Source: Hypanus sabinus
Lineage: Eukaryota
Length of the DNA: 64,000 nt
Direction of reading: 5' to 3'
NCBI RefSeq assembly: GCF_030144855.1
Contig: NW_026780455.1
Location: 1 to 64,000, forward strand
Shown here in pieces: positions 3,486 through 61,800 of the stretch. Each line of letters starts with the position of its first letter. Positions within the stretch are counted from its first letter, which is position 1. The notes beneath the pieces are model-generated. The model saw only the letters and a program-made list of their open reading frames with translations. It had not been told where the DNA came from and did no database searches. Position numbers and translations under genes: made by a program.

Positions 3486-3657
3486 ATGGATCATAATCTT
3501 CAAAATACATCGCGCAATGCTGCGGCAATTGCGAAGAATTTTTTCTGGACGATTCAATTTATCATTGATGTGCTGGCGTGGGACTATGGAATTGCTGCGG
3601 CGCTTGTGACATTCCAAGACGTTTACTACCCTGTACTCGCCATTGTAGCTCTTCCTG
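3486..3657 (+). pseudogene. GPR139/GPR142-like GPCR copy 1, exon 1 (N-terminus + start of TM1)
   Basis: MDHNLQNTS...YYPVLAIVALP+G, then donor GTAAGT at 3658 (phase 1). Homologous to the three other exon-1 copies. Confidence 0.85.
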
Positions 3658-4356
3658 GTAAGTGTCTCGTCTCTTCCTCATGATGTTGTTGAAAAAATAT
3701 ATGTCAGCTTCTCTTTTATCCCCGTCCTCCCACAGCTCGCTAATTATAAGCCAGATCTTTCCAACTGGTATCGCTTTAGCAGACATGGTCTGAGTGTATT
3801 CGATACGGTACCCCATGCAAGGCAAATTGAGCACATGAGGAGCCATGCTATCCAAAGGGACTTTGCTTTGTGTCTCCAGAACTCGCTTCCCACTGAAGGC
3901 AAAGAGCGGATGCAGACGTGTCATATTCTGCAAGGAGCTCGGTGACCAGTAGTGACCTCAGTTATCATTGTGCTAACTTTACCCTTCCTGAGTTTTATAA
4001 AAAGGCCTGGATGAGGAAGTGGAGGGATGGTTCAGTAAATTTGCTGGTGACACAGAGGTTGAGCTTTTGTGCGTCGTGTGGAAGGCTGTCAGAGATTAGA
4101 GCGAGACATTGTTATGATGCAATACTGGGAGAGAATGTGGCTGATTAGAGTTCAACGAATCTTAGTCCAAAGTGGCTCAATTTGGTAGATCAAATATGAC
4201 GGCAGAAATATAGTATGAGTGGTTAAGACTCTTGGCAGTGTGGAGGATCAGAGGGTTTTGGCGGTCCGATTCCATAGGGCGTTCAAAACAGCTGCGCAGG
4301 GCGATTTTGTGAGTGAGAAGGAATATGGTGTATTGGCCGCTATTAATAGTTGAATT

Positions 4357-5638
4357 TGTTTTGAAGGATGAACAACCGCTTATGGGTAGAAGGGTACAGA
4401 ATTGCCCATATTTTTTCGCTTCCCTGGGAGAATTACAAACAGTTACTGTTGCAGTGCTGCTAATGAGAGAGAAAGGTATGAAACAAAAACATACTGGGAC
4501 TGGAACATTTGCTTCAGATAAGAGAGAGATAACACCGGGAGAGAGAGACTTGCTGTTCTACCATATTATGACTCCTGAAAGACTTATGGCTCCGGAGAGG
4601 GCTGTTTACTTGGTACCATTCTGTTCATTAAAATTCCTCAGTGGACATCCGGAGTGAGCTGGTTTGATGACTAAGCCATTCAAAAACCTGATTGACCCCT
4701 GAGACCCCGTGAGTATGGATAAAAGTGAAGACTGGGGAGACACCCCTCAGACACACCAGCAGACGCACCAGGATACAGACTAGTGAGCACTGCTTAAGTG
4801 TTGGAACCCACAAGAAAATTGTGGGGCATCGGAGGACCGAACTAAGGATCGGTCAATTTTAACTCACAGTGCTTATAGCGAGGCAAGAGGGGGCTTGTGT
4901 GTGTGTGTCCACCCTTGCCTGGGTGACGAGTCCACCATAGAAGAACGGTCTAGCTAAAGGCGAGAGGGATCATACTGATTGGCCACAACAACACATCGAC
5001 CGATCAAGAACGTAAAGGAAGGTTTGANNNNNNNNNNNNNNNNNNNNNNNNNNNNNNNNNNNNNNNNNNNNNNNNNNNNNNNNNNNNNNNNNNNNNNNNN
5101 NNNNNNNNNNNNNNNNNNNNNNNNNNNNNNNNNNNNNNNNNNNNNNNNNNNNNNNNNNNNNNNNNNNNNNNNNNNNNNNNNNNNNNNNNNNNNNNNNNNN
5201 NNNNNNNNNNNNNNNNNNNNNNNNNNNNNNNNNNNNNNNNNNNNNNNNNNNNNNNNNNNNNNNNNNNNNNNNNNNNNNNNNNNNNNNNNNNNNNNNNNNN
5301 NNNNNNNNNNNNNNNNNNNNNNNNNNNNNNNNNNNNNNNNNNNNNNNNNNNNNNNNNNNNNNNACATCGACCAGCAAATACCTAGGCCTGTATGAACTGA
5401 ACTGAACTTTATATTCACATATGAAAAATCATTATCCTCTAGACAACGATAGAGCTTGTTTATTGTTGATTATTATTATACCAACACTTTTGTGGGTAAC
5501 GTGTGTTATCTGTATATTTGCATTGTGGATATTGATTTGTATATTTTACTAATAAACATTGTTTTGAAAATAGTACCAGACTCAAACCGAATCCTTCTAT
5601 CTTTGCTGGAAAAACACCCAGTTACGGGCTACGTAACC
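4357..5638 (+). mobile_element. Solo LTR (Gypsy-like) with AATT target-site duplication; contains an assembly gap
   Basis: Starts TG and ends ...TACGTAACC. AATT at 4353-4356 and 5639-5642, AATAAA at 5551. Interrupts CR1 sequence. Confidence 0.6.
5028..5363. other. Assembly gap (N run)
   Basis: Run of N. Confidence 1.
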
Positions 5639-6479
5639 AATTGAATTAAGAGCCGAGAGGTAATGTTGCACCGATATTGGGCAATGATTTGGCCCTACGT
5701 GGAGTACTCTGCTCAGTTAAGGTTGCCTCACTTCAGGAAGGATGCAGAAACCGTAGTAAAGGTGCAGATGAAATTTGCAAAGATGTTGACTGGATGGGAT
5801 TGGGGAACTTGCCTTATGAAAACAGGTGAGTGAACACGGCCTATTCTCCTCGAAGCGACGAAGAATGAGAGGCGACCTGATAGAGGTGTATCAGATGATG
5901 AGAGATATGGATCGTGTGGATAGTCAGAGGTATTCTCCAAGTGCTGAAATGGTTTCCATAAGTGTGCACAGGTTTAACCTGCTGGTTTGCAGGTACAGAG
6001 GAGATTTTATGGGGAACTCACTCTTTTATGCAGAGAGTCGTGAGTGTGTTGAATGTTCTGCTGGCAAAAGTGGTGGAGAAGGATACGAGAGGGACTTTTA
6101 AAGAGACTTTTGGAGAGGTATTTGGAGGGTAGGAAAATAGAGGGCTGTGGGTAGTCCTAGTCATACCTAGGTTGGGACATGTTCGGCACAACTTGTGGGC
6201 CGAACGGCCTGCATTGTGCTGTTGGTTTTCTATGTTTCCAAATCGACAATCGTCACTTTCATTGCCGGATCATGCCAGTCTGAACAGATTGACTATTCCT
6301 GCTCCTATTGCTAATGAACATGCCACTCCCCAATATGCTCCTTTCCAACGAATATCAATGTCCAATCTCTCTCCGACTAGACAATCTCCAATCTATATCT
6401 CACTCACCATTTTGAGTTTCCAATCCGTCTGGCTCTCAAAAGACTAATTCTAACTGGCAAATTGATTTTAACCCAGATT

Positions 6480-7292
6480 GGTGTCAGGCAGTTGGAGTTT
6501 AACTCAGATAAATGTGAGGTGGTTAATTTTACTAGGTCAACTCTGAAGGCAGAATATAGTATTAATGGTAAGACTCGGCAGTGTGGAGGATCAGAGGGAT
6601 CTTGGAGTATGAGTCCACAGAACACTTAAAGCAGCTGCGCAGGTTGACTCTGTGGTTAAGAAGGCGTCCGGTGCATTGGCCTTCGTCAATCATGGGATTG
6701 CGTTTAGAAGCCGGGAGGTAATGTTCCAGATATATGGGACCCTGGTCAGACCCCACTTGGAATACTGTGCTCAGTTCTGGTCGCCTCACTACAGGATGGA
6801 CGTGGAGGCCATAGAAAGGGTGCAGAGGAGATTTGCACGGATGTTGCCTGGATTTGGGAACATGCCTTATGAAATCTGGTGGCGTGAACACGGCCTATTC
6901 TCCTCGAAGCGACGAAGGATGAGAGGCGACCTGATCGAGGTCTATCAGATGATGAGAGTTAAGGATCGTGTGGATCGTCAGAGGTTTTCGCCAAGTGCTG
7001 AAATGTCTGCCGTAAGAGGTCACAGGTATAACGTGTTGGGTTGCAGGTACAGAGGAGATGTCATGGGGAATTCGTTTAAGCAGAGAGTCCTGAGTGTGTT
7101 GAATGTTCTCCTGGCAACAGAGGTGGAAGCAAATACGAGAGGGTCTTTTAAGAGACTTCTGGAGAGGTACTTGAGCTTACAAAATATAGGGTTGTCGGTA
7201 AGCCTATCATTCCTAAGGTTGGGACATGTTCAACACAACTTTATGGGCCGAAGGTCCTGTATTGTGCTGTTGGTTTTCTATGTTTCTATGTT
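6480..7292 (+). mobile_element. CR1 LINE 3' fragment
   Basis: ORF 6652-7308: LVRPHLEYCAQFWSPHY..IERVQRRFARMLPG..RMRGDLIEVY. Tail ttctatgtttctatgtttct. Confidence 0.9.
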
Positions 7293-8053
7293 TCTAGATC
7301 CGCCATGATCACGTTCGTTGCCAAATCACGCCAATCCGAACAGATGGACGACTCCTGCTCCTATTGCTAATGCTCTTATGTTCTCATTGTTTCTCGTGTA
7401 TACCGTTGAGCGGACCTGGAATTATATCACTGTAATACATGGCATATTAATAAGTTTATTATTCTCTTAACACCTCCTCGTCTCAACTCCTTATTCTGAC
7501 GTCGAAGATCAGAATAATTCCAGGTATCCACTGATATCACTGATTAGTCCACAGGGTACGGCAGCTGAATTCAGCCATTCGAACACCGAGGCTTCTCCAT
7601 GATAGCTGATTTATCATCCCCCTGAACCACATTCTGCCGACCACTCCCAGTATCCATTGACACCCCGACGAATCAAGAGCCTGTCACTCTCCGCTGCAAA
7701 CAAACTGGCAGCCATAGCTGTCTGTGGCGAGAAATTCCACACATTTAGCAGCCTTCGAGTAACGAAATTGCTCCCCATCTCTGTTCCAACGAGATTGGTT
7801 TACTTTTGTGAAAACTCGTTCTCAGAAGCTACATATCCACGTCCATAATATCTCGGACGTTCAAAATTCGTTAGGTTTCACTGAGAATCCCCTCAATATA
7901 CTGAACTTCAGCGGGCATATTATACTCACTACCGAATTAGTAATGGGTCCCTTATTCATCTCTGTTCTCGGAAGTGTTGTCGATTAAAACAATAGTTTTT
8001 AAGGAATGTTTCATCAAAATATGTGTTAATGACCTTTATTTCTCTCCGCACAG

Positions 8054-8960
8054 TGAACGTGGTGACATTAGTCATCCTGTCGCGGGGAAAGTGCGGTCTC
8101 TCCAAAGGGGTCACAAGGTACCTGGTTGCCATGGTAGCTGCGGATCAGTTGGTCGTTTTCTTCGATTTGGTTTTGAGCAAGATTCCGATGACTCTCATTC
8201 CAGGAGAGGTTTTCCTCTGGTCCCGTCGTGTTCCTGTGTCCACGCCGTCGTGTTCTACGCCGCCACGGACTGTTCCGTCGCTTTCACCTTTGATCGATTT
8301 GTAGCCATTTGTTTTCAGAAGCTGAAACAAAAATACTGCACCGGGAGAGCGGCGGCTCTGGTTCTGGGGACAGTGACTCTGCTGAGCTGCTTAAAAAACA
8401 TGTTTTGGTACTTTTTTCTCGATGGGACATATTCGATATTCAGAACGTCCGTGTTGTGTTATAGCAGTAAACGCTTATTTTCCCCACCGAAGCTCGCAAC
8501 ATTTCTGATTATTCATTTCGTCTTCACCCCAATATTACCCTTTATCCTGATTCTGCTGCTAAACAGTTTAACCATCAGTCAGGTCTTAGTGGCCAGCCGA
8601 GCCCGGAGGAGACTCCGTGGTCTGCGCGATGGCGAGACGCCCGCCGATCCGGAGATGAAGAACCGCAGACAATCCCTCCTGTTACTGCTGGCGATGTCCG
8701 GGAATTTCATCCTGCTGTGGGCGCTGCTGACTGTGTCTTCCGTATGCGAGAGTCTCGGTGATTCCGTTCCCTTGACTCCCCCGAAATCTCTTCGGGATCT
8801 GGGCTACATGCTGCAACTGCTGAGCTGCTGCACCAACACGGCCCTTTACGCCGTGGTCCAGGCCAGGTTCAGGGTTCAGCTGCAGGAGACGGTGACATTT
8901 CCCTTCCGTCAAATGACAAATTTCACGCGTGGATGTCAGAGGAACATTAATCCTCAGTGA
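8054..8960 (+). pseudogene. GPR139-like GPCR copy 1, exon 2 (frameshifted)
   Basis: Acceptor cacAG|TG at 8053/8054, in phase with exon 1. 7-nt deletion at 8239/8240 (frameshift) and a 12-nt deletion at ~8279. DRF, NRRQS and CCTNTALY motifs; stop ends at 8960. Confidence 0.9.
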
Positions 8961-12960: not shown

Positions 12961-13171
12961 CTCAACGAGATTGGATTGATTTTTGCATAGTAGAGGACTT
13001 AAGAGTTATCGGGAAAAGACAACAAGGTAGATGTAATCTCTTTCCAGCTGCAGCAATTCAAAACCATCTCTGCTCTATGAAGTGCTATCGATTAACATAA
13101 TTGTTCAGAGAATACTTCCATCCAAATGTGTGTTAATGGTCTTTATTTCCCCCACAGTGAACATGGTGACA

Positions 13172-14349
13172 TCAAGAAGTACAAAAAAACTGGATTAACT
13201 CAGGAGGCAGGGCAGCATCCGTTGAAAGAAGCGGTCAACGTGTCGGGTCGAAACCCTTCGTCAGGACTAAAGAAGGAGGGGATAGGGGCCCGATAAAGAA
13301 GGTGGGGAGGTTGTGCAAAACCGATCAGAGGAAAGATCAAAGGGTGGGGGAGGTGGAGAAGGAATCATTATTGGTAGTAGCAGAACGCATAGTCATGAGA
13401 GGTGAAAGGCAGAAAGTAGAGGTGGGATGGGGAAGGGAGATTAAGTGTATTACTAGAAGTTGGAGAATTCTATGTTCATACCAAGGGACTGGAGACTACA
13501 CAGACGGTATATGAGATGTTGTTCCTCCAACCGGAGTTTTGCCTCATCATCACAGTAGAGGAGGCCATGTGTGGACATATCTGAATGGGAATGAGAGGGA
13601 GAGCTGAAGTGAGTGGCAACCGGGACATCCTGTCTGTTGTGGCGGACGGAGCGTAGGTGCTCGACGAAGCGGTCCCCCAATCTGTGTCGGGTCTCGCCGA
13701 TGGAGAGGAGGCCACACCGGGAGCACCGGATGCAATAGATCACCTCAACAGACTCACAAGTGAAGTGTCGCCTCACCTGGAAGGACTGTTTGGGGCCCTG
13801 AATGCTGGTAAGACATGAAGTGTAGGGACAGGTGTGGCACTTACGCTTGCAGGGATAAGTGCCAAGACGGAGAACTGTGGGGAGGGCAGTGTGGACCAGG
13901 CAGTCAAGGAGGGAGCGATCACTGCGAATAGCAAAGAGGGGTAGAGAGGGAAATACATCATTAATGGTGGGGTCCTGTTGAAGTTGTCGGAAGTTGCGGA
14001 GGATATTATGCAGGATCCGGAGGCTCATGTAGTAGCGGAGGGCTTTGAGTCCTTCTGGATGGGGAATTGAAGTGTATAAGGATTGGACATCCATTGTGAA
14101 AGTGACAGGGCATCTGGAAGTTATTGAAGTGTTGGAGGGCATGTGATGATACCCGGAAGTAAGTAGGGACGGAATGGAGTCGAGGTAGGCAGATACATGT
14201 TCGGTGGGACAGGAGCAGGCTGAAACTATAGGCCTACCAGGACAGTCCGCCTTATGGATCCTGGGGAGGAGCTAAAAGCGAGCAGTGCGGGATATGGGAA
14301 TTATGAGTTTTTTGGCTGAGGATGAAATGTCTCCGGAGTTGATACTCTT
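13172..14349 (-). mobile_element. Penelope-like retroelement (internally deleted RT + GIY-YIG endonuclease) with 14-bp TSD
   Basis: ORF 13453-14142: TMDVQSLYTSIPH (PLE RT) and VIYCIRCSRCGLLSIGET..RLGDRFVEH (GIY-YIG). TGAACATGGTGACA at both 13158-13171 and 14350-14363. Confidence 0.9.
13234..13267 (-). ncRNA. Minimal hammerhead ribozyme motif (type I, PLE-associated; A14>C variant)
   Basis: Minus strand reads GTC-CTGACGA-A-GGGT TTCG ACCC-GACA-CGTT-GAC: CUGANGA core, UUCG-capped stem II, GAAA mutated to GACA, stem I GTC/GAC. Confidence 0.6.
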
Positions 14350-16559
14350 TGAACATGGTGACAATCGTCAGCCTGTCGCGGGGAAAGTGCGGTCTCTCCA
14401 AAGGCGTCAAAAGGTACCTGGTTGACATCGCAGCAGCGGATCAGCTCGTCGTTCTCTTCAAACTGCTATTGGGCATGATTCTGATGACTTACATGCCAGT
14501 TGAGCTTTTACTCTGGTCGTTACGTGTTTCCATCTGTAATATCCACGCTGTCCTGCTCTTCGCCAACACGAACTGTTCTGTCTGGTTCACAGTCACTTTC
14601 ACCTTTAATCGATTTGTCGCCATTTGTTTTCAGAAGCTGAAACGAAAATACTGCACCGGGAGAGCGGCGGCACTGGTTCTGGAGACAGTGATTCTGCTGA
14701 GCTAACTGCAGAATATTTTCTGGTATTTTTTGCTCCATGGGACAGATACGTTGATAATGTCCACCGAGGTGTGTATGCGTCATTTTAGTTTATTCCCGAT
14801 CACAGAGACAACATTTCTAATGATTCCTTCCTTCCTTACTCCAATATTCCCATTTGTCCTCATTCTGCTGCTCAACCGTTTAACCATCAGACACGTCTTC
14901 GTGGCCAGCCGAGTCCGGAGGAATCTCCGTGGTTCGCGCGATGGCGAGTATCCCGCGGACCCGGAGATGAATAACCGCAGGCAATCTCTTCTGTTACTGC
15001 TGGTGATGTCGGGAAATTTCATCCTGCTCTGGGCGCTGCTGACGGTGTGTTCCGTATGGGAAAGCCTGTTTTTTAATGTCGGCTCCATTCCCCCGAATTC
15101 TCTGCTGGAGCTGGGCTACGCGCTGCAACCGCCGAGTTGCTGCACCCTTTACGCCGTGGTCCAGGCCAGGTTCGGGGCGCAGCTGAAGGAGGCGGTGAAA
15201 TCGCCCTTCAGTCTCATGTCAAAGCTTATTCGGCGTTGTCGGGACATCCTTCTTCCTCAGTGACCTGTCTTCCATACCGCCCCAAAATATTCCATTCCTT
15301 CACATCCATTGAGGCTCTGAACTGCCGTGGTTAGCTCCTGCCCTGCACCCTCGATACACTGACAAGTTCGGCGATATCTCCCCAGTCTGCTTTCAGCATT
15401 GCTCCTTCCAGTTTCGTTTCGCCTCTAGTTCCCTATAATGTCTCCCACAGTTGTACCAATTGGGTGATTCGCACTTTCTTTGCATGCCAAACCTTGCCAT
15501 CAAAATCTCAATGCGGAGTTGGAACCTGAGAGATTTCCATGCGGCCCTAATGGCTGCGCGGAATCCCGCAGTATCGCTCAATCTCTTTCCTCCGGCGATG
15601 GTCTAGTGGCTTCAAGATCTGCTGCCATTAATCGGTGCAGGCGGGTCCCTTGCCAAAGACTGACCGGGAACTCCGCTCTCGACTTTGATCTTTGGAGATC
15701 TGTCTGGCTGCCACCGCGAGAACATGTCATTACCTCGCAGTGGAAAAACCACTCATCCCATCGCCGCTCGTTCTTCCCAAGCAGGAATTGCCGTCCCAGA
15801 GCGTTTGGGAAATTAAAAAAAAAATCATGGACACTCAGTGCAGTGGAGGTCCAAACTGTCGATCTGGATTGAGTACTTTGGGTCTGTGGGGAAGGTGACT
15901 GCTGAGGAAAGGGCACCTGAACTTTTTGTATTTATTGAGATTCGGCACGAAATGTGAGATACTGTCAGATGTATGGCTCGAGCATAAACACGTTCGATTC
16001 GTTTGGATACATCAGAGCTTTTCCCCACTGACCCTTCAGGAACAGTGCATTGCGCTGGAGCATTCCAGTTGAGTTGCTGATTGGATCGTATCCTTTCCGA
16101 AACTTCGACAAACATCTTTGTTCGGTTTCCGAGAGTCTGTCATGTTTTTCCTTCTCTGTTTGATCATCCGGTGTTCTCCTCATTTCCCGCCGCTCTCTGT
16201 GACGGCCTAGGTTGCCTCCAACAGTTCAAATGCTAATACATTTATGTTGATAGCTTAATGGGTCACTGAAAATTGTCCCATGATTCGGGCTAGGGGAACG
16301 TGAAACATTTGCCAGTCATGGAAACGGACTGGAATTAAGGCATTTGAGAAGGACACGACCCGGGAGGCTTATCCATAAGACCGAGTTGCAGGAGAGAGCA
16401 TGAAATTTAATTTGCTCCGGCAATAGAGGGCGGAAAGCAGTGGTTGAGAGCAGCGATTCTGCATGTGACAAGTGCTGGAGATGTTCTGACGTTTGACTTG
16501 GATGAAAATAGGCATGATTCATTAATATGCTTGTGGACGACACAAAACGTGATGGCGAA

Positions 16560-23068: not shown

Positions 23069-23249
23069 ATGGATCATAACCTGCGAAATGCATCGCGGAA
23101 TGCGGCGGGAATGGTGAAAAATAATTTCTGGTTTTTTCAATATCTTGTTGAAAATTATGAGAGGCTGTCGTTGAATTCTCGAATCATGTATGCTCTTTGG
23201 ACCATCCAACTGATTTACTATCCTCTACTCGCCATTGTAGCTGTTCCTG
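23069..23249 (+). CDS. GPR139/GPR142-like class A GPCR copy 3 (intact), exon 1
   Basis: gcaATGG start; MDHNLRNAS...YYPLLAIVAVP+G; donor GTTAGT at 23250, phase 1. Confidence 0.85.
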
Positions 23250-24771: not shown

Positions 24772-24918
24772 NNNNNNNNNNNNNNNNNNNNNNNNNNNNN
24801 NNNNNNNNNNNNNNNNNNNNNNNNNNNNNNNNNNNNNNNNNNNNNNNNNNNNNNNNNNNNNNNNNNNNNNNNNNNNNNNNNNNNNNNNNNNNNNNNNNNN
24901 NNNNNNNNNNNNNNNNNN
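24772..24918. other. Assembly gap (N run)
   Basis: Run of N. Confidence 1.
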
Positions 24919-27170: not shown

Positions 27171-27661
27171 TCCCATGTTAGCAGAGGAGTTGAACTTCCA
27201 TCACCGTGATACTTGTTACATTAATCAGTTCACTATTGTCTTAATACTTTGCATTTGTAACTCCAACTGGCACGAATGATCTGAGCACATTCCAGTCATT
27301 GGTTGATATCACTGCTTAGCGCATAAGACTTGGGAGCTGAATTCAGCCATTTGATCACCCAGACTTCTCCGCCATTCCATCAAAGCTGATTTACCATCCC
27401 TCCCAAAGACATTCTGGCGCCATCTCCCCGTATCCATTGAAACACCGACGCATCAAGGGCCGATCAATTCCCTCTACAAAATCGTCCCAATGAACTGGCC
27501 ACCGTAGCCGTCTGTGTCGATGAATTCCACAAAATGCACCAGCCTCATTCTTTCGCAATTGCTCCCCAGCTCTGTTCCAAAGAGCTAACGATGAAAAGAA
27601 TTGCAATTTGAGAATGTTTCATTCCAAAGGTTTTTAATGATCTTTACATCTCTTCACACAG

Positions 27662-28584
27662 TTAACGTGGTGACAATCGCCATCCTGTCACGGGGAAAGT
27701 GCGGTCTCTCCAAAGGCGTCACGAGGTACTTGGTTGCCATGGTAGCAGCGGATCAGCTAGTCGTTGTCTTCGATCTGGTATTGAGCAAGATTCTGATGAG
27801 TTACATGCTGACTGAGGTTTTCGTCTGGTCGTTTCGTGTTCCCGTGTGTAATATCCACGCTGTCGTGTTTTACGTCGCCACGGACTGTTCTGTCTGGATC
27901 ACCGTCACTTTCACCTTTGATCGATTTGTCTCTATTTGTTCTCCGGAGCTGAAACGAAAATACTGCACCGGGAGAGCGGCGGCTCTGGTTCTGGCGACAG
28001 TGACTGTGCTGAGCTGCGTAAAGAACATTTTCTGGTATTTTTTGCTCCATGGGAAATATTCGATGCAAGTTTCGTCCTTGCTCTGTTTTAGTTCTTATCG
28101 TTTTTCCCTATCTCTGGAGACAACATTTATTGTGATTCATTTCTTACTCACACCAATATTCCCCTTTGTCCTCATTCTGCTGCTCAACAGTTTAACCGTC
28201 AGACACGTCTTAGTAGCCAGCCGAGCCCGGAGGAGACTCCGTGGTTCGCGCGATGGTGAGACGCCCGCCGACCCGGAGATGAAGAACCGCAGGCAATCCC
28301 TCCTGTTACTGCTGGTGATGTCGGGGAATTTCATCCTGCTTTGGGCGCTGCTGACGGTGTATTCCGTGTGGGATATGTTGCTATTTTACATTAACTTGAA
28401 ACCCCCGACTTCCCTGCGGGAGCTGGGCTACATGCTGCAATTGCTGAGCTGCTGCACGAACACGGCCCTGTACGCCGTGGTCCAGACCAGGTTCAGGGTG
28501 CAGCTGAAGGAGACGGTAAAATCTCCTTTCAGTCTCATTGCAAAGTTCACTCGGCGTTGTCTTGACCCCATTAAACCTCGATGA
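27662..28584 (+). CDS. GPR139/GPR142-like class A GPCR copy 3 (intact), exon 2; spliced product 367 aa
   Basis: Acceptor cacAG|TT at 27661/27662 completes a GTT codon. Open frame with TM1-TM7: MVAADQL, CNIH, SVWITVTFTFDRFVSIC, ECL2 Cys, TPIFPF, LLWAL, NTALY. 181+923=1104 nt. Confidence 0.9.
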
Positions 28585-36873: not shown

Positions 36874-37758
36874 TCACTGAAAATTCATGCGGCACTGACA
36901 ACAGCGAGTCATCTTTGCTATGAGACATAGGGGCGATTTCACCGTCTCCTTCAGCTGCACCCTGAACGTGGTCGGGACCACGGCGTAAAGGGCCGTATTG
37001 GTGCAGCAGCTCAGCAGTTGCAGCATGTCGACCAGCTCCCGCAGAGAATTTGGAAGTATCACGTGAATGTAAACAAACAGGCTATCCCATACGGAATACA
37101 CCGTCTGCAGCGCACACAGCAGGATGAAATTCCCTGACTTCACCAGCAGTAACAGGACAGATTGCCTGCGGTTATTCATCTCCGGGTCTGCGGGCGTCTC
37201 GCCATCGCGCGAAAAAAGGAGTCTCCTCCGGGCTCAGCTGGCCACTAAGACGTGTCTCATGGTTAAACTGTTGAGCAGCAGAATGCTGACAAAGCGGAAT
37301 ATTGGGGTGAGGAGGGAATGGATCACAATAAAAGTTGTCTATAGAAATCGGGAATATCTATAAGAACTGAAACAGAGCAAGGATGAAGCTACAATCGAAT
37401 ATGTTCCATGGAGCAAAAAGTACCAAAAAATGTTCTTTACGCAGCTCAGCAGAGTCACTGTCCCCAGAACCAGAGCCGCCGCTTTCCCGGTGCAGAACTT
37501 TCGTTTCAACTTCGGAAAACAAATGGCGACAAATCGATCAAAGGTGAAAGTGATGGTGAACAAGACAGAACAGTCCGTGGCGGCGTAGAACACGACGGCG
37601 TGGATATTACAGACGGGAACACGAAACGACCAGAGGAAAACCTCCGATGGCATGTAACTCATCGGAACCTTGCTCAATACCAGATCGAAGAGAACGACCA
37701 GCTGATCCGCTGTTACCATGGCAACCAGGTACCTTGGGACGCCTTGGGAGAGACCGCA
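36874..37758 (-). pseudogene. GPR139-like GPCR copy 4, exon 2 remnant
   Basis: A ~69-nt deletion removes the acceptor and first ~13 codons (ccaagg-c-TGCGGT). In-frame TAG at 37339-37341; the frame continues to the stop at 36874. Confidence 0.9.
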
Positions 37759-40712
37759 GCCTTGGATGGAAACATTCTCAAATTGCAATTCTTTTCATCG
37801 TTAGCTCTTTGGAACAGAGATGGGGAGCAATTCGGTAAGAATGAGGCTGGTGAATGTGTGGTATTCATCGGAACGGACGGCTATGTTGGGCAGTTCATTG
37901 GGACGATTTGTAGCGGGGATTCATCGGCTCTTGATTCGTCGGGGCCTCAATGGATACGGGCAGAAGGCTCCAGAATGTGGATGGGAGGGATGGTAAATCA
38001 GTTTTGATGTAATGACGTAGAAGGCTGTGTGATCAAATGGCCGAAGTCAGCGAAGCATTGATATCAACCGATCGCTGGAATGGGCTCTGATTTTTCTCGC
38101 CAAAAGGAGTTGCAAACGGAAAGTGTTAAGAGAATAGTGAACTGATTAATGAACCAAGTATCACCGAGACGGAAATTCAACTCCTCTCCACTACAAACAT
38201 AAGAGAATAATAGCAATAGGAGCAGGAATAGTCCATCTGTTCGGTCTGGCATGCTCCGACAGTGAAGATGATCATGGCTGATCTGTCCACGGACTCATCG
38301 CCGCATAACAGTCTTTTCCTCAGAGCCCTTAATTCTTCTACTATTCCATCAACAATGACAACTTGTCTTAAATATATTTCATGAGCAAAACTCTATTGCG
38401 TCATTGTGCAGAGAAGTCCACGGATTCACCTGGTTCTGGGAGAAAAACAGTGCCTCCTCAGCTCCGTCTAAAATTTATAAACCAGAATCTTCAGGCTATT
38501 TCCCTGAATTATTGTCTTAACTCCCAGTGAAACAACTTTCCTACTTCTGTTTTATCTAACCCTTTAATACTATTAAATGTTTTTGTCAGATTTTTTCTCG
38601 CACTTCTGAATTCCAACCAGTACCAGCCCAGGCGAGTCAATTCCTCCTTATCGTCGAACCATCTCTTCTGTGCAATCAGCTGGTGAACTGGCTAAAAATC
38701 CAGTTGATCCTTCCTCAAATAGGAGACCAGAATTACACTGTCCTCCAGACACCGCCTCACCAGTACCTTCTGCAGACCGGTTGCTGTTAATTTCAATTCC
38801 TCTGGTAACGAAGACCAACGTCCCATTTGACTTCCTGAGAGCCTGCTACACTTGCAAATGAAACTTTTGTGTTCCAAGCACAAGTACTCCAATGTCACTC
38901 CGCACAGCAGCATACGGCAATCGTTTACCACTTAAATAAGGCACTTCCCAAGGAGGTGACCACGCATTCACCAACTTTGTGCTCCATCGTCCAGATGCTA
39001 GTGAATTCGCTTAACCCTTAACCATATCCCTCAGCAGGCTCTCAGTTTCCTAAGCACACTTTGTGACGGCATCAATCATGGCAGTGATGATGCCTGATGT
39101 GACCTCATACTCTTCAACAACTGAGAGGCTAGAGCTATTTATTTATCTATATAACCGTATAGCTATCGGTTTATTTATTTATTTAATTCATCGATGCTGC
39201 ACACACATACAAATTTTGGCAAAGCCAATTAATCCTGTGCTGACCCAAATTGACTCATCACTATGAGATTCAGAAAGAGCAGACGTTCTGGTCACCTCAG
39301 TACAGGAAGGGCGTGTAAGTTTCACAGCGGGTGCATAGGAAATGTATCACAATGTTGACTGGATTGGAGAGCATTCCCTGTGAGAAGAGTTTGTGTGTGC
39401 TCAGATTTGCTTCTCTTGGAATGAAGGGGCATGAGAGGTCACCATGGTGGGGGTATTGACAGGAGAAGAGGCTGAGATAATATTTGCCTGACAGAGAATT
39501 AATCGGGACACCGAGAGTACCAACACTGGACAGACAAATTCCGCAATGCATCGAAACATAGAAAACCGGCAGCACAACACTCGCCATTCGGACCGAATGC
39601 TGTACCGAAAATGTCCTTCCCTTAGAAATTACCCAGGGTTACGCATAGCCCTCTGTTTTTCTAAGTTCCATGTATCAACACAGGAGACTCTTCAAAGACC
39701 CTATCGTATCCGCCTCCCCCACTGTTGCCGGCAGCCCATTCCACACACTTACCACTCTCTGCGTAGAATACTTACACGACATATCCTCTGCACCTAATTC
39801 CAAATATAAAAATTGTGCCCTCTCGTACCAGCCGTTTCAGCCCTGAGAAAAAGCCTCTGACTATCCACACGATTAAGTCCTCTCGTCTTCTTGTACACCT
39901 CTAATCCTCCGATGCTCCACGGAAAAAAAAAAAAATAATTGAGTTCAGTCAACCTATTCTCATTCCCAATCCAGGTAAATCGCCTCTACACGCTTTCTAT
40001 GGTTTTCACATCATTCCTGTAGTGAGGCAAGTAGAAAAGAGCATAGTTCTCCAGGTGTGGTCTGAACAGAGTCCTAGATAGCTGCAACATTACCGCTCGG
40101 TTCTTATACTCAGTCCCACAATTGGTGATGGCCAATACACCGTATCACATTCTTAACCACAGAGTCAACCTGAGCAGCAGCTTTCAATGTCTCACCCAGT
40201 CGGACGACAAGATCCCTCTCAAACTTCACACAGCCATGCGTCTTTCCATTGAGACTATATTCTGCCATCGTATTTGACCAAGCAAATTGAACAACGACAC
40301 ATTTGTCTGGGTTGAAACCCATATGCCACTTTTGAGCGCAGTTTTGCATCCTATCTATGTCGCTCTGTAACCTCTGACACCCTCCACACTATCCACAACA
40401 TCCCGAACATTTGTGACATCAGTCAAGTTACTAATCTGTCCCTCCATCCATCAATGTCAATAATGAAATTCACAAAGAGCAGTGGTCCCACAACAGATCC
40501 CTGAGGCACCGCCCTCCACGCAGATTATTCCTCCTTATATTCTCAATAAGCCTTGCATGGGATACCTGATCACATTCACTCAGCCGAAGTTTCCGGAAGT
40601 GATACCGCTTTGAGAGAGCAGCTATGCAATTAGCGTGTCGTTAGAGGACAGGTATGAAAGAGAAGCTGACATATTTTCAACGATAATCAAGAGGATGAGA
40701 TGAGGAGCTTAC

Positions 40713-40893
40713 CAGGAACAGCTACAATGGCGAGTAGAGGGTAGTAAGTCACTTGGAAGGTCCAAAGAGCATACTCGATTCGAGAATCCAACGTCATCCA
40801 TTCATAATTTTCAACAAGATTTTGAAACGGCCCGAAAATATTCTTCGCGATTCCCGCAGAATTCCGCGAAGCATTTTGCAGATTATGATCCAT
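40713..40893 (-). pseudogene. GPR139-like GPCR copy 4, exon 1
   Basis: MDHNLQNAS...YYPLLAIVAVP+G, donor GTAAGC at 40712. Confidence 0.85.
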
Positions 40894-54645: not shown

Positions 54646-55571
54646 TCACTGAGGATTAATGCTCGTGTGAAAACACCGAGCGAGCTTTGTCATTAGACGG
54701 AACGGGGATTTCACCGATTCTTTGAACTGCAGCCTAAACCTGGTCTGGGCCACGGCGTAAAGGGCCGTGTTGGTGCAGCAGCTCAGCTGTTGAAACATGT
54801 AGCCCAGTTCCACCAGAGAGGTCGGGGGATATGTTTCAAAATAAATATACAGGGTATACCATATGGAATACAGCGTCAGTAGCGCCCACAGCAGGATGAA
54901 ATTCCCCGACATCTACAGCAGTATCAGAAGGGATTGCCTGCGGTTGTTCATCTCCGGGTCGGCGGGCGACTGAACGTCACGAGAACCACGGAGTCTCCTC
55001 CGGGCTCGGCTGGCCAGTAAGACGTGTCTGATGGTTAAACTGTTGAGCACGAGAATCAGGACAAAGGGTATTATTGGGGTGGGGAGGACACGAATCGCTT
55101 GCAATGCTAACGACGGAAAATCGGAAAAGAAGCGGCGACTTTCCAGGCAGAGCAAGGGCATATTTGAAATCGAATAAAAACCATCGAGCGTAAAGTACAA
55201 GAAAATGTTCTTTAGGCAGCTCAGCAGAGTGACTGTCCCCAAAACCTGTGCCGCCGCTCTCCCGGTGCAGTAATTTAGTTTCAGCTGCGGAAAACAAATG
55301 GCCACACATCGATCAAAGGTGAAAGCGACGGTGAACCAGACAGAACAGTCTGTGGCAGCGTAGAGTATGACGGCGTGAATATTACACACTGGAACACGAT
55401 AACTCCAGTGTAGAACCTCAAATGGCATGTAGATCATCGGAATCTTGCTCAATACCAGATCGAAGAAAACGACCAGCTGATCCGCTGCTACCATGGCAAC
55501 CAGGTACCTTGTGACGCCTTTGGAGATACCGCACTTTCCACGCGACAGAATGACGATTGTCACCACGTTCA
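54646..55571 (-). pseudogene. GPR139-like GPCR copy 5, exon 2 (single in-frame TAG in TM6)
   Basis: Acceptor cacAG|TG at 55572/55571. Frame is open except for TAG at 54913-54915 (..LLILL*MSGNF..). DRC at the DRF position; stop at 54646. Confidence 0.9.
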
Positions 55572-57237
55572 CTGTGCGGAGGGAAGTCAAGATATTTAAA
55601 ACACATTCGGAATGAAATTTTCTCTGAAATCAACAATTTTAATCGACAGCATTTTCAAGAGCAGAGTTGGACTTGGAATCGATATAACTACTAAGGAGAA
55701 AATCGGAATCATTATTAAATGGGTAGTGACTATAATGTACCTGAGAAGTTCATGAGAATGACGGGAATCTTATTGAAACCTATTCAATATTGTAAGGACG
55801 ACATATCGTGGACGTGGAGAGCTGCAGCAGTGTTGGATTTACAATAGAAACCCATCACCTCAGAACAGATGTGGTTAGAAATTTGTTTCGACCGTGGCTG
55901 GTGAATACGCGGAATTCCTCGCCACAGACGGCTATGGGAGTCAGTTCGTTGGAATCATTTGTAGCAGAGAGTGATAGGCACTCGATTCGTCGAAGCCTCA
56001 ATGGATATAGAGAGTGGGCGCCAGAATGTGGTTGAGATGGATAATAAATCAGCTATGATGGAATGGCGGAGAAGCCTCCGTGCTCGAATCACGGAATTCA
56101 ACTCCCGAATCATATGGGACAAGCATTGATATCAGTGGATAGCTGGAATGTGTTCTGACCTTCGCCGGCAGGAGAAGGGGCTGAAAATGGAATGCGATAA
56201 TGAACTGATTACTGATTAAGTCCTGTATCACGGTGCCAGAAATTCAACTTCCTTCAACAGTAAACAGGAGAAAAAACTTAGAGCAGAAGAGGTAATGAAA
56301 TAGTAGCCAAAATAGTTCATCTGTTCGGACTGGCATGCACCGCCATTGAAGATAATCATTGCTGAGCTGACCATGGACATTTATTCAACTGCCTGCATTT
56401 TCCCCCAAAGCCCGTAATAGCCCTACTACGGATAAAATCAATCCAAACTTTTGTAAAATATATTTACTGAGGTAATGTCCACTTCTTCATTGGGCAGAGA
56501 ATTCCACAGATTCACCAGCCTCTGTGAAAAGCAGTTCCTCCAAATCTCCGTCCTAAATTCACTCCCACAAGCTTCAGCCTATGCCCCCTAGTTCTAGGCT
56601 CACCGACAAGTGGAAACAACTTTCCTGGCCCTGTTGTATCTATCTTTTCGTATTTTTTACATGTTGCTGAAATATCATTTCTGGTTCTTCTGAATTCCAG
56701 TGCGTGCAGTCGCAGGCGACAACATCTCTCCTGATAGTCTCGCCTCCTCTTGTCTGGAATCAAAATGGGGAAACGACTTCAAGGCCAGTAAAATCCTCCC
56801 CAAGTCACCGTACCAGACTTGCACGCAGTACTACAGCTGCCGCCTCACAAGTACCACGCGCATTTGCAGCATAATCAACTAACACTTAAATTCACGTCTG
56901 TAGCAATGAAGACCAATATCCCATCTGCCTCCTCGTTAGACTGCGACTGTTGCAAACAAACCTCTTTTGGTTGAAGAACAAACACTCTAAAGTGACTCCA
57001 CGTGGCAGTATACTGCAATCGTTTACCACTTAATAAAATTGTGTTCTTCAATTGGTCCTCTTCCATGGTAGATAACCTCGCTTTCATCAACATTTTCCTC
57101 CGTTCGACTAGACGCTAATACTTTCGCTTAAATAATTCCACTCCAATATTTGTGTAGGCGGTAGATCGTGGCAATAATGGTGGCCACGTGACCTCCTTCT
57201 TTTTCACAGCTGGGGCTTTGAGGTATTTATTTATATA

Positions 57238-57264
57238 TTCATTCATTCAAGCACTTATCCATTC

Positions 57265-57307
<43 letters not shown>

Positions 57308-57327
57308 TATTCATTCATTCATTCATT
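57238..57327. repeat. (TTCA)n/(TCAA)n compound microsatellite
   Basis: tcaatcaatcaa... flanked by ttcattca runs. Confidence 0.9.
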
Positions 57328-57784
57328 CTGGCGATGAAGTCCCCTCCAGCAGGGTTCGGGATAGCTGAATTATCCTACCATTTCCCAAATGGACTGTGGA
57401 ACATAAATCACTGGAAGCATGTCTATGCTTCACAGTGGTTGCAGATATAATTTGTCAGACTACTGCCTAGATTGGAGGCCATTTACTCTGAGGAGAGTTT
57501 GTGAGAGCTAGATCCTGCTTCTCAGGGAGTGAAGGTGCATGTGAGGTCACTTGCTGGCAGTGTTTGAGAGGTGAAGAGGCAAAGGTAACGTTTGCCTGAC
57601 GGAGAAGTAACCCGGACGCCGACAACCCCAAAGCTGGAGAGAGAAATCCTGTAATGCAATTAGCCGATGTTTGCTAAAGCGGTACCGGTTTGAGAGACGG
57701 GCCATGCAATGAGACGACAGGCATTAAAGAGAAGCTGAAATTCACTCTTCAACGTTAATCAGGAGGAAGGAGCCAAGCACTTAC

Positions 57785-57965
57785 CAGGAACAGCTACAAT
57801 GGCGAGGACAGGGTAGTAAATTACTTGGATGGTCAAAATCACATAAGTGACACGAAAATCCAACGGCAGCGTTTCATAATATAAAGAAAGAGATTCATAG
57901 GGCCAGAAAATATTCTTCTGAATTCCCGCAGCATTCCGTGATATATTTTGCAGATTACGATCCAT
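57785..57965 (-). pseudogene. GPR139-like GPCR copy 5, exon 1
   Basis: MDRNLQNIS...YYPVLAIVAVP+G, donor GTAAGT at 57784. Confidence 0.85.
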
Positions 57966-58819: not shown

Positions 58820-61800
58820 ACCATTTTTGTTGTCTTGTAGTATTGTGTGCAGCTTTGGGCTCCATATTTTAGAAAGGATATACTGACAGTGGTAAGGTTT
58901 CAGAGACGATTCACGAGAATGTTTCAAGGAGTGAAAGGGTTGCCGTATGAGGACTGGCTGGCTGATCTTGGGCTGTATTCCCTGGAGTTGAGGAAATTAA
59001 GGGCGGGATCTTACAGAAAAATTCCAAATGTTAAAATGCCTGAACAGATTAGATGTGAGATGGGGATTATATGGCTGAGGGCAGGATTGAAGGACATCCA
59101 TTTAGAACACAGATGCGTGGAAACTACTTTAGACAGATGGCCGTAAATCTGTGGGATTTGTTATAACGAGCTGCTGTGGAGGCCAATACATTGGGTGCAT
59201 TTAAGGCAGAAATGGATACGTTCTTGATTAGCCAGGGCATCAATATTCATATATTTCATTGCTTTAAAAGGGATAAAGAGGGGGAAAAAGTGGAGGAGGT
59301 GTGGCATTACTGTTCAGGGACTATTACAGTTGCAGAACGGGTGCTTGATGCAGCAGGATACTCTTATGAGTCTGTAAATGTGGAGGTCAGGAAGAGGAAT
59401 GGGACAGTTACTCAACTGTCGTATTCTATACGCAGCGGCAGAGATACCAAGGAGTAGAGTGGGAGGCAGATTTTGGAAAGGTGCAAAAATAACAGGGTTG
59501 TGATCATGGCTGACTTTAACTTCCCTAATATTGATTGGCACTTGATTAGTTCCAAGGGTTTAGATGGGGCAGTGTTTAGTAAGTGTGTCCAGGATGGATT
59601 CACGCAACAGTATATTGATAGGCCGACCAGGGTGAATGCCATACTAGATCTAATATTAAGTAAGGAACGGGGTCAGGTCACAGATCTGTCAGTAGGTGAA
59701 CATCTGGGGGACAGTGATCACCGCTCCCTCACCTTTAGCATTTTCATGGAAAAGGATAGAATTAGAGTACAGGAAAAAAATTAATTGGGGAAGGGTAAAT
59801 TATGAGGCTATAATGCTAGAACTTGCGGGTGTGAATTGGGATGATGGTTTTGAAGGGAAATGTACTATGGACATGTGGTCGATGTTTAACGATCTCCCGC
59901 AGGAATTTAGGGATAAGTTTGTCCCGGTGAGGAAGATAAAGAATGGTAGAGTGAAGGAGCCATGGGTGTCAAGTGAAGTGGAAAATCCAGTCTGGTAGAA
60001 GAACGCAGCATACATGAGGTTTAGGAAGTAAGGATCATCTGGGCCTATTGAGGAATATTGGGTAGCAAGAAATGAGCTTAGGAAGGGGCTGAGAAGATCA
60101 AGAAGAGGGCAGGAGAAGGCCCTGGCGAGTAGGGTAAAGGAAACACCCAAGGCGTTCTTCAATTATGTGAAGAACAAAAGGATGACAGGAGTGAAGGTAG
60201 GACCGATTAGAGATAAAAGTGGAAGATGTGCCTGGAGGCTGTGGAAGTGAACGAGGTCCTCAATAAATACTTCTCTTCTGTATTCACCACTGAGAGGGAA
60301 CTTGATGATGGTGAGGACAATATGAGTCAGGTTGATGTTTTGGAGCATGTTAATATTAAGGGAGAGGAAGTGTTGGAGTTGTTAAAATACATTAGGACGG
60401 ATAAGTCCACGTGGCCTGATGGAATATTCCCCAGGCTGCTCCATGGGGCAAGGGAAGAGATTGTAGAACCTCTGCCTAGGATCTTTATGTCCTTATTGTC
60501 AACGGGAATGGTATCGGAGGAGTGGAGGGATGCCAATGTTATCCCCGTGCTCAGAAATTAGTAGGTCTAGTCCAGGTAATTATAGACCAGCGAACCTTCC
60601 ATCTCGGGTGGGAATGCTGTTGGAAAAGATTCATAGAGATACGATTTAAGGACATTCATAAAATCGTGCTATGATCAGGGTCAGTCAGCATGGATTTGTG
60701 AAGGGCAGATCCTGCATAACAAGCCTGATAGAGTTCTTTGTGGAAGTGACCAGGCATATGGATGAGAGTAGTGCAGTGGATGTGATCTACATGAATTTTC
60801 GTAACGCATTTGACAATTTTCCACACGGTTGGCTTATTCAGAAAGTCAGAAGGCATGGGAGCCTGGGAAGATTGGCCAGGTGGATTCAGAATTGGCTTGC
60901 TCTACTTTTTGGGAATGTTATTAATGACCTAGATGTGGGGGTTGAAGGGTGGGGTGGCAAGTTTGCAGATGACACAAAGGATGGTGGTATTGTAGATAGT
61001 CTAGAGGATTGTCAAGGATTGCAGAGAGACATTGATAGGATGCAGAAGTGGGCTGAGAAGTGGCAGATGGAGTTCAACCCGGAGAAGTGTGAGATGGTAC
61101 ACTTTGGAAGGACAAAAAGCAAGGCAGAGTACAAAGTAAATGGCAAGATACTTGGTTGTGTGGAGGAGCAGAGGGATCTGGAGATCTATGTTCAAAGATC
61201 CCTGAACGTTGCCTCACAGGTAAATAGGGTAGTTAAGAAAGCATAGCTTTCATAAGTCTAGGGATAGAGTTTAAGATAGGTGATGTAATGATGCAGCTCT
61301 ATAAAACTCTAGTTAGGACACACTTGGAGTACTGTGTCCAATTCTGATCGCCTCACTCTTGGAAGGATGTCGAAGCATTGGAAAGGGTACACAGGAGATT
61401 TACCGGGATGCTGCCTGGTTCAGAGAGACATGATTATGATCAAAGATTAAGGGAGCTGGGGATTACACTTTGGAGGGAAAGAGGATGAAAGGAGTCATGA
61501 TAGAGGTGGACAAGATATTAAGAGGAATAGACAGAGTGGATAGCCAGCGTCTCTTCCCCAGGTCACCACTACTCAGTGCAAGAGGACATTGCTTTCAGGT
61601 TAGTGGAGGTCAGTTCAAGGGGGATATTAGAGGAAGGTTATTCACTCAGAGAGTGGTTGGTGCGTGGAATGCACAGCCTGAGTCAATAGTGGAGGCAGAT
61701 ACAGTATGAAGTTTAAGAGACAGTTAGATAGGTATATGGAGGAATTTAAGGTGGGGGGTTATATGGGAGGCAGGGTTTCTGGGTCGGCAAAGCATTGTGG

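Follow-up and report, generated by a model that had tools for sequence, protein, structure and literature searches.

In odorant receptors, the residues that vary lie mostly inside the TM3-TM6 pocket (TM, transmembrane helix). Positive selection on the extracellular parts of the receptor was reportedly found in the MRGPR multigene family by Choi and Lahn in 2003, as cited in PMC3221663. The CC chemokine receptors are a multigene family of class A G-protein coupled receptors (GPCRs) that also has positive selection on its extracellular parts (PMC2880985). Here we describe a stretch of 64,000 nucleotides (contig NW_026780455.1, positions 1 to 64,000; hereafter the window) and the five tandem class A receptor copies, A to E, that it carries. 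We found that the window holds an old tandem birth-and-death cluster of a class A GPCR family specific to elasmobranchs, and that a subset of its extracellular codons has probably evolved under diversifying selection.

This family shares several features with the systems above. As in the MRGPRs and the CC chemokine receptors, there has been a lineage-specific tandem expansion with many pseudogenes, and the candidate selected codons are mostly extracellular, over a conserved signalling core; those receptors form another clade of class A, whereas the family described here is hosted by cartilaginous fish. Odorant receptors, trace amine-associated receptors (TAARs) and vomeronasal type 1 receptors (V1Rs) likewise form birth-and-death tandem clusters with many pseudogenes (four of the five copies in our window), and their single conserved transducer interface combined with diversified ligand contacts can be likened to the layout of the elasmobranch family. 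The latter differs from the odorant receptors in its invariant pocket floor under variable loops that form a lid, and in its two coding exons.

The best sequence match of copy C in the Protein Data Bank (PDB) is GPR139 (E = 4e-9; muscarinic M4 has E = 2e-7). GPR139, with GPR142, is an orphan class A receptor activated by L-Trp and L-Phe (cryo-electron microscopy structures 7VUG-7VUJ). Its ligand contacts include residues of extracellular loop (ECL) 2 and positions 6x54, 6x55, 6x58, 7x30, 7x35 and 7x38, and Arg 6x51, which is confined to GPR139 and GPR142, is critical for ligand recognition by GPR139 (PMC8807744). GPR139 is highly conserved across vertebrates (PMC12208981). The elasmobranch family has acidic residues in TM2, TM3 and TM7 as GPR139 does, and the upper ligand-contact positions of GPR139 correspond to hypervariable positions of the elasmobranch family. 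However, identity between the two is only ~22-25%, and unlike GPR139 the elasmobranch family has invariant cysteines for the C3.25-ECL2 disulfide and has many tandem paralogs per sampled shark or ray genome, with frequent pseudogenes.

Variation on the extracellular side

The five two-exon copies were identified by tblastn with the open frame 27601-28584 as the query (Table 1). A first-pass annotation of the window had recognized four of them and taken them as members of one family; they are homologous copies, but three of the four are pseudogenes, and the window holds a fifth, copy D (37758-36877 on the minus strand). We assigned topology from an AlphaFold2 (AF2) model of the Hypanus ortholog together with class A anchor residues. 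Pocket positions were mapped by Ballesteros-Weinstein numbering through a HMMER alignment to human GPR139, with the pocket residues taken from PMC8807744 and not from 3D distances.

Variation in this family is localized far beyond chance. Among 119 family members the mean column entropy is 2.0 bits in ECL1, 2.2 in ECL2 and 2.4 in ECL3; the corresponding values are 0.36 bits in intracellular loop (ICL) 1, 0.20 in inner TM3, 0.47 in inner TM6 and 0.91 in ICL3. Between paralogs, 47-59% of the ECL codons are changed versus 12-23% on the intracellular side. The strong differences previously reported for ECL3 are present in the tblastn alignments of copies A, B, C and E. Those reported for ECL2/TM5 are found in the same four copies as well, except that the string LFPIT of copy B is an out-of-frame read. 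Only these two segments had been noted as variable, whereas ECL1 is equally so. Near-identity of ICL1, ICL2 and ICL3 among the copies was confirmed, and the ECL2 cysteine is retained in all five.

The timing of these changes can be read from orthologs. In two pairs formed by a window copy and its Hypanus ortholog (copies B and E), recent changes affect 1 of 39 and 2 of 44 ECL codons and are spread evenly along the gene. Since changes between orthologs are even and those between paralogs are loop-heavy, the localized diversification must have come after the duplications and before copies A, B, D and E began to decay. The pattern is thus not a product of neutral pseudogene decay, as had been argued at first sight of the sequence. 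Within the window this diversification belongs to the past; four of the copies died afterwards, and copy C alone is still open.

Positions deep in the pocket (D2.57, H3.28, A3.29, L3.32, T3.36, D3.37, E5.39, H5.42, W6.48, E7.36 and Q7.42) show 88-100% invariance across the family. In contrast, the upper positions 6.58, 6.61, 6.62, 7.32 and 7.35 have entropies of 2.7-3.8 bits, with the first four at 3.2-3.8. Along the first strand of ECL2 the family entropy alternates (3.5/0.3/3.6/1.3/3.7/1.0/3.6 bits), which is the pattern expected if one face of a beta-strand is variable. Judged by these mapped positions, variation sits on a lid and vestibule over a conserved pocket floor. The ligand-facing variation that the first-pass annotation proposed is therefore found in the lid and vestibule, but not in the deep orthosteric pocket. 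Among the sequencing runs searched, no RNA run was found that contains the gene. In a DNA run from a relative, family contigs are numerous over the conserved segments but scarce over ECL1, ECL2 and ECL3.

Probable selection on extracellular codons

Selection was measured on a codon alignment of exon 2 from 12 sequences (five window, three Hypanus and four Mobula copies), using our own GY94-F3x4 likelihood program; omega is the ratio of nonsynonymous to synonymous rates (dN/dS). Pairwise dS is 0.2-0.35 between paralogs, so the data are unsaturated, and 0.04-0.05 between orthologs, so the age of the cluster is several times that of the ortholog split, taken here as the split between two stingray species. 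The dN/dS between copy E and its Hypanus ortholog is 0.35. By region, omega rises from 0.36 (inner TM halves) and 0.48 (ICLs) to 0.69 (outer TM halves) and 1.38 (ECLs; p = 0.066 against 1). Individual values are 0.31 for ICL1, 0.39 for ICL3 and 0.95 for ICL2, the last with few changes of any kind, at a near-normal synonymous rate. Purifying selection on the intracellular face (omega 0.31-0.48) is clear.

Plain site models (M1a/M2a and M7/M8) gave likelihood-ratio test (LRT) values of 58-97, and the plain LRT is 53 in the extracellular half versus 0.19 in the intracellular half, so the signal is restricted to the former. We rejected these models as the decisive test because data simulated under gamma rate heterogeneity, with no positive selection, already give LRTs of 12-51 (n = 8). 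The test that carries our conclusion is a dual-rate comparison of M1a+G with M2a+G, whose maxima under the null are 4.4 (22 replicates, shape 1.67) and 7.6 (8 replicates, shape 0.7). Six genes with an open exon 2 give a dual-rate LRT of 27.9 with 5% of codons at omega ~7. Across the dual-rate site models, the positive class comprises 5-8% of codons with omega 4-7, and nearly all of them are in ECL1 and ECL2. When each third of the exon was tested on its own tree, the LRT was 17.3 for the ECL1 third and 11.7 for the ECL2 third.

Candidate codons with omega above 1 fall in ECL1, ECL2 and the TM6 tip/ECL3 (Table 1). Neither result that would have refuted the first-pass proposal (dN/dS of at most 1 at these sites, or variable residues facing neither the pocket nor the extracellular surface) was obtained. 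Those in the TM6 tip/ECL3 are suggestive only. The codon alignment is gap-free around codons 111, 118 and 301-305, which lie between invariant flanks, and codon 118 shows eight residues with almost no third-position change. A site-wise alpha/beta grid identified 11 positive sites at p<0.05, about the chance expectation, and was used for location only.

False amino-acid divergence could in principle arise where frameshifted stretches of pseudogenes or loop indels are misaligned. Such material exists: the ECL2 string of copy B is partly out of frame, there are indels at ECL2 codons 204-208, and one Mobula copy (Mb1) has a 3-codon gap at 107-109, on the TM2/ECL1 boundary. However, the signal survives removal of pseudogenes, masking of lesions (dual-rate LRT 27.1 with all twelve sequences) and deletion of the ECL2 indel zone (16.1), and it recurs in a gapless alignment of six intact genes from a shark, as described below. 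The artefact is thus largely refuted, and we regard it as very improbable as the source of the signal.

As an independent replicate we used these six paralogs of the sevengill shark Heptranchias perlo, which are intact, gapless and 88-96% identical. Their M0 omega is 0.94 and the dual-rate LRT is 19.0. Of 24 candidate sites, about 20 are in ECL1, the top of TM4, both strands of ECL2, the top of TM6/ECL3 and the top of TM7, including 6.52, 6.58, 6.61, 6.62, 7.34 and 7.39. The intracellular half has an omega of 0.32.

Relaxed constraint and gene conversion as rival explanations

Several results weigh against diversifying selection. Whole-loop omega is 1.1-1.6 and not significantly greater than 1 in either clade. 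The value for H. perlo is 1.55, with a synonymous rate 2-3 times the average, and the ECL2/TM5 and ECL3 segments together give 1.11 (p = 0.58) at a synonymous rate ~1.9 times the gene average. The ECL3 third of the exon alone is not significant (LRT 2.9). The plain-test null values given above count here too. Synonymous divergence is 1.5-3-fold higher in the loops in two independent clades, for a cause that is unexplained (28045-28113 and 28381-28407 in copy C, and in H. perlo). Some sequences counted as open are probably dead, such as the Hypanus ortholog of copy B (HsB), with D3.49N and deviations at 18 of 88 invariant positions, and the Mobula copy Mh3, whose exon 1 is frameshifted. Finally, the dual-rate code is our own, with fixed relative branch lengths, 6-12 sequences and 30 null replicates, and the codon models have no multi-nucleotide changes.

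In one alternative, constraint on the loops would only be relaxed: they would tolerate any residue at omega ~1 beside a constrained scaffold, with no adaptive diversification and with values above 1 arising as a model artefact. Consistent with this are the whole-loop values (1.11-1.55), an omega of 1.0-1.2 in exon 1 (the N-terminus), a clade-wide omega of 0.69 among members many of which are dead or degenerating, and the inflation of the plain M2a LRT under rate heterogeneity. Relaxation does not account for the dual-rate LRTs, which exceed all 30 null replicates both in the window clade (16-28) and in H. perlo (19). The loops also hold the invariant residues Cys202, Y193 and P199, and with invariant codons inside the loops the remaining loop codons must exceed the loop average. 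At codons such as 118 and 196, 7-8 residues occur while silent change is almost absent, and the strict i/i+2 alternation along the ECL2 strand speaks for one functional face and not for general laxity. We therefore consider relaxed constraint alone possible but rather unlikely. As for the original proposal of diversifying selection, the dual-rate site models do reject neutrality, although the two segments on which it was based do not when taken whole.

Gene conversion offers another route to the same appearance: if the scaffolds of neighbouring genes are homogenized and the loops escape, the loops would merely look hypervariable. The synonymous rate is 0.8 in the scaffold versus 1.5-3 in the loops. 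In Mobula hypostoma, third-position divergence between the neighbours Mh2 and Mh3 is 0.03 in codons 61-130 and 321-350 and 0.2-0.3 between these segments, which suggests conversion between the two, and conversion probably acts in some clusters of the family, this pair being an example. Among the window copies, however, a GENECONV-like permutation test of run lengths found no significant tract, and the best matches were cross-species pairs. Scaffold dS is still 0.2-0.3 with omega 0.3-0.5, indicating purifying selection, and conversion cannot explain scaffold residues that are invariant between sharks and rays. A test restricted to the ECLs with their own rate scale gives LRTs of 27-36, and the trees of individual segments concur on all well-supported clades. 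We consider a conversion mosaic improbable as the explanation of the loop pattern. Exchange of ECL2 cassettes from distant paralogs was also considered and rejected, as the tree of the ECL2 segment matches the gene tree.

Diversifying selection on a subset of extracellular codons is likely and remains the reading that we favour. Divergence after each duplication fell mainly on the lid, formed by ECL1, the two strands of the ECL2 hairpin, the TM6 tip/ECL3 and the top of TM7, where a small class of codons probably changed its amino acids several-fold faster than silent changes accumulated. Purifying selection meanwhile held the deep pocket and the inner halves of the helices, as well as the intracellular loops and helix 8. 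Through its lid, each paralog may then recognize a ligand of its own, or its own variable part of a ligand, over a common polar pocket floor (D2.57, H3.28, D3.37, E5.39, H5.42, E7.36 and Q7.42) and with one intracellular transducer. Such a layout can be likened to the 'message-address' arrangement of peptide receptors. From these patterns we infer differing ligand specificity and a shared G protein for the paralogs.

Cluster content and gene structure

All five copies match Pfam 7tm_1; for exon 2 of copy C the match (PF00001) scores 69.9 bits against a gathering cut-off of 30.5. With N-termini of full-length homologs as queries, exon 1 (180 nt) was located 2.2-4.4 kb upstream of exon 2 in four of the five copies. 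Every exon 1 found opens with an ATG, and one base separates its last codon from a GT donor, so that the intron is in phase 1; it lies just before N1.50. In copy C, exon 1 codes for the start Met, for an N-terminal segment that contains an N-x-S glycosylation motif and for the outer two thirds of TM1, and ends with one extra base followed by the donor GTTAGT. Exon 2 of copy C spans the end of TM1 to the C-terminal tail in an open frame. A stop closes this frame upstream of 27662, a polypyrimidine tract and CAG acceptor end at 27661 (cacAG, with AG at 27660-27661), and 28582-28584 is the stop codon. Spliced, copy C (23069-23249 joined to 27662-28584) has a coding sequence of 1104 nt, or 367 amino acids and a stop. 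Given the open spliced frame, the acceptor and the stop, 27662-28584 is exactly exon 2 of copy C.

Table 1. Receptor copies, loops of copy C and candidate selected codons in the window. AF2, AlphaFold2; NEB, naive empirical Bayes.
Feature	Position	Strand	Basis or remark
Copy A exon 2	~8054-8960	+	tblastn
Copy A pseudogene	3486-8960	+	exon 1 (3486-3657) with 9-nt deletion
Copy B exon 2	14350-15263 (start approximate)	+	tblastn
Copy C exon 1	23069-23249	+	tblastn with homolog N-termini, then translation and flanks
Copy C exon 2	27662-28584	+	tblastn; the region noted in the first-pass annotation
Copy C ICL1	27685-27717	+	
Copy C ECL1	27805-27840	+	codons 109-120
Copy C ICL2	27937-27969	+	
Copy C ECL2	28045-28113	+	codons 189-211; beta-hairpin (AF2 strands), invariant Cys202
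Copy C ICL3	28216-28290	+	codons 246-270, nearly invariant
Copy C TM6 tip + ECL3	28369-28407	+	codons 297-309
Copy D exon 2	37758-36877	-	tblastn
Copy D pseudogene	36877-40893	-	exon 1 (40893-40714) open
Copy E exon 2	55571-54646	-	tblastn
Copy E, recent pseudogene	54646-57965	-	exon 1 (57965-57785) open
ECL1 candidate selected codons	codons 110, 111, 115, 118		dual-rate NEB
ECL2 candidate selected codons	codons 192, 196, 197, 204-206, 210, 211		site models, site-wise test
TM5 top candidate codon	codon 217		
TM6 tip/ECL3 candidate codons	codons 301, 302, 305		NEB 0.83-0.98; suggestive only

Copies A, B, D and E are pseudogenes with stops, frameshifts or deletions. Exon 2 of copy A is frameshifted near 8220-8244 and lacks 12 nt of TM3. 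In copy B, exon 2 is interrupted by a stop at codon 179 in TM4, and its TM7 motif has lost 9 nt. When this copy is compared with its Hypanus ortholog, ECL2 also shows a compensated frameshift (~14790-14805; +1, then -1 about 14 nt on) that puts five codons out of frame and so mimics loop hypervariability. This copy deviates at 18 of the 88 invariant positions, defined as at least 95% conserved among distant family members, and D3.49N is among the deviations. We found no exon 1 for copy B in the window by tblastn with homolog N-termini. The stretch 13158-14363, directly upstream of its exon 2, may explain the missing exon. This stretch contains an open reading frame (ORF) at 13453-14142 on the minus strand, encoding 229 amino acids that are Cys-rich with a GIY-YIG-like look and that have no Pfam match above threshold. 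Copy D has lost its acceptor and the end of TM1/ICL1 (13 codons) to a 69-nt deletion in exon 2, which also has two in-frame stops. Exon 2 of copy E has a single stop, in TM6.

Copy C is the only intact copy of the five. It keeps the family residue at 79 of the 88 invariant positions, and 5-6 of its 9 deviations are common to its clade. Because most of its deviations are clade-wide, copy C is, on the evidence of its reading frame and conserved residues, a plausible functional gene.

Retroelement ORFs are interspersed among the receptor copies in this vertebrate sequence. One of them, at 60671-61246 (+), matches Pfam RVT_1 (E = 5e-11), and another stretch, at 6652-7308 (+), looks like the tail of a reverse transcriptase and has no Pfam match. 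Runs of N are present at 5028-5363 and at 24772-24918, the latter within the intron of copy C.

Family membership and relation to GPR139

A word-index protein search returned 1735 matches at E<=1e-5. The best 120 of these 1735 are all shark and ray proteins; NCBI names 119 of them "probable G-protein coupled receptor 139" and one "C-C chemokine receptor type 3-like". Copy C is 55-77% identical to these best 120 homologs, the closest being from Mobula (77%). Proteins of Hypanus sabinus are orthologous to copy E (96% identity, to an intact gene) and copy B (90%), and the two-exon layout is also found at the Hypanus and Mobula loci. In public gene models of close homologs the start is wrong: they either read through the 3′ end of the intron or take a retroelement fragment (KFADDTK motif) as the N-terminus. 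At three Mobula loci (misread starts at 7598-7774, 7170-7358 and 7323-7495 of the respective loci) the true exon 1 is ~2.2-2.7 kb upstream. One H. perlo protein has an annotated N-terminus with three full 14-residue tandem repeats and a partial fourth, with one N-x-T glycosylation motif in each full repeat.

Copy C has the residues typical of class A receptors (N62, D91, D147-R148-F149, C123/C202, W288 and N327..Y331), with only Pro7.50 replaced, by Thr. The AF2 model of the Hypanus ortholog has seven TM helices and helix 8, a mean predicted confidence (pLDDT) of 84 and a beta-hairpin in ECL2. The top Foldseek matches to this model are all class A receptors, and of the solved structures those closest in fold are peptide receptors, which have the same ECL2 hairpin. 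Of the fold matches GPR139 is the most similar in sequence (22% identity), and it ranks 25th by fold. The family shares with GPR139 a non-Pro residue at 7.50 (NTALY aligns with NFFLY) and a TM5 His (H220 aligns with H187, 5x43) that is 88% conserved in the family. However, Arg 6x51 of GPR139 and GPR142 has no counterpart: copy C has Leu291, and the family has F (59%), L (27%) or Y (12%). Because this Arg is replaced by Leu, Phe or Tyr, we set the family apart from GPR139. By sequence it appears to be a distinct, elasmobranch-expanded class A GPCR family, a distant relative of GPR139 and not its ortholog. Our literature search found no description of the elasmobranch "probable GPR139" family.

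Implications for cartilaginous fish

Cartilaginous fish are poor in GPCRs and olfactory receptors and lack MAS1/MRGPR relatives, as described in the whale-shark genome paper (PMC8455134). The genomic features of a chemosensory repertoire are found here, namely a tandem birth-and-death array, pseudogenes, and dual-rate LRTs of 16-28 and 19. By analogy with known repertoires, the family might be an unrecognized sensory repertoire of these fish (olfactory, taste/solitary chemosensory or skin) with a constant floor and a hypervariable lid, which we put forward as a speculative and unlikely reading. If it were such a repertoire, lid and floor together could read a shared ligand moiety plus a variable part, as in peptides or conjugated amino acids.

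The yield of the window itself is modest, being an old and mostly dead cluster with one candidate functional gene. The alternate positions of the ECL2 strand, together with 6.58, 6.61, 6.62, 7.32 and 7.35, provide testable residues for deorphanization. More generally, a constant signalling face with a diversifying lid in a large tandem family is the genomic signature of a repertoire for diverse or changing ligands, which could be chemical cues, peptides or pathogens. A sensory repertoire of this kind, if true, would help to explain how cartilaginous fish achieve chemical discrimination with very few odorant receptors and no MRGPRs.

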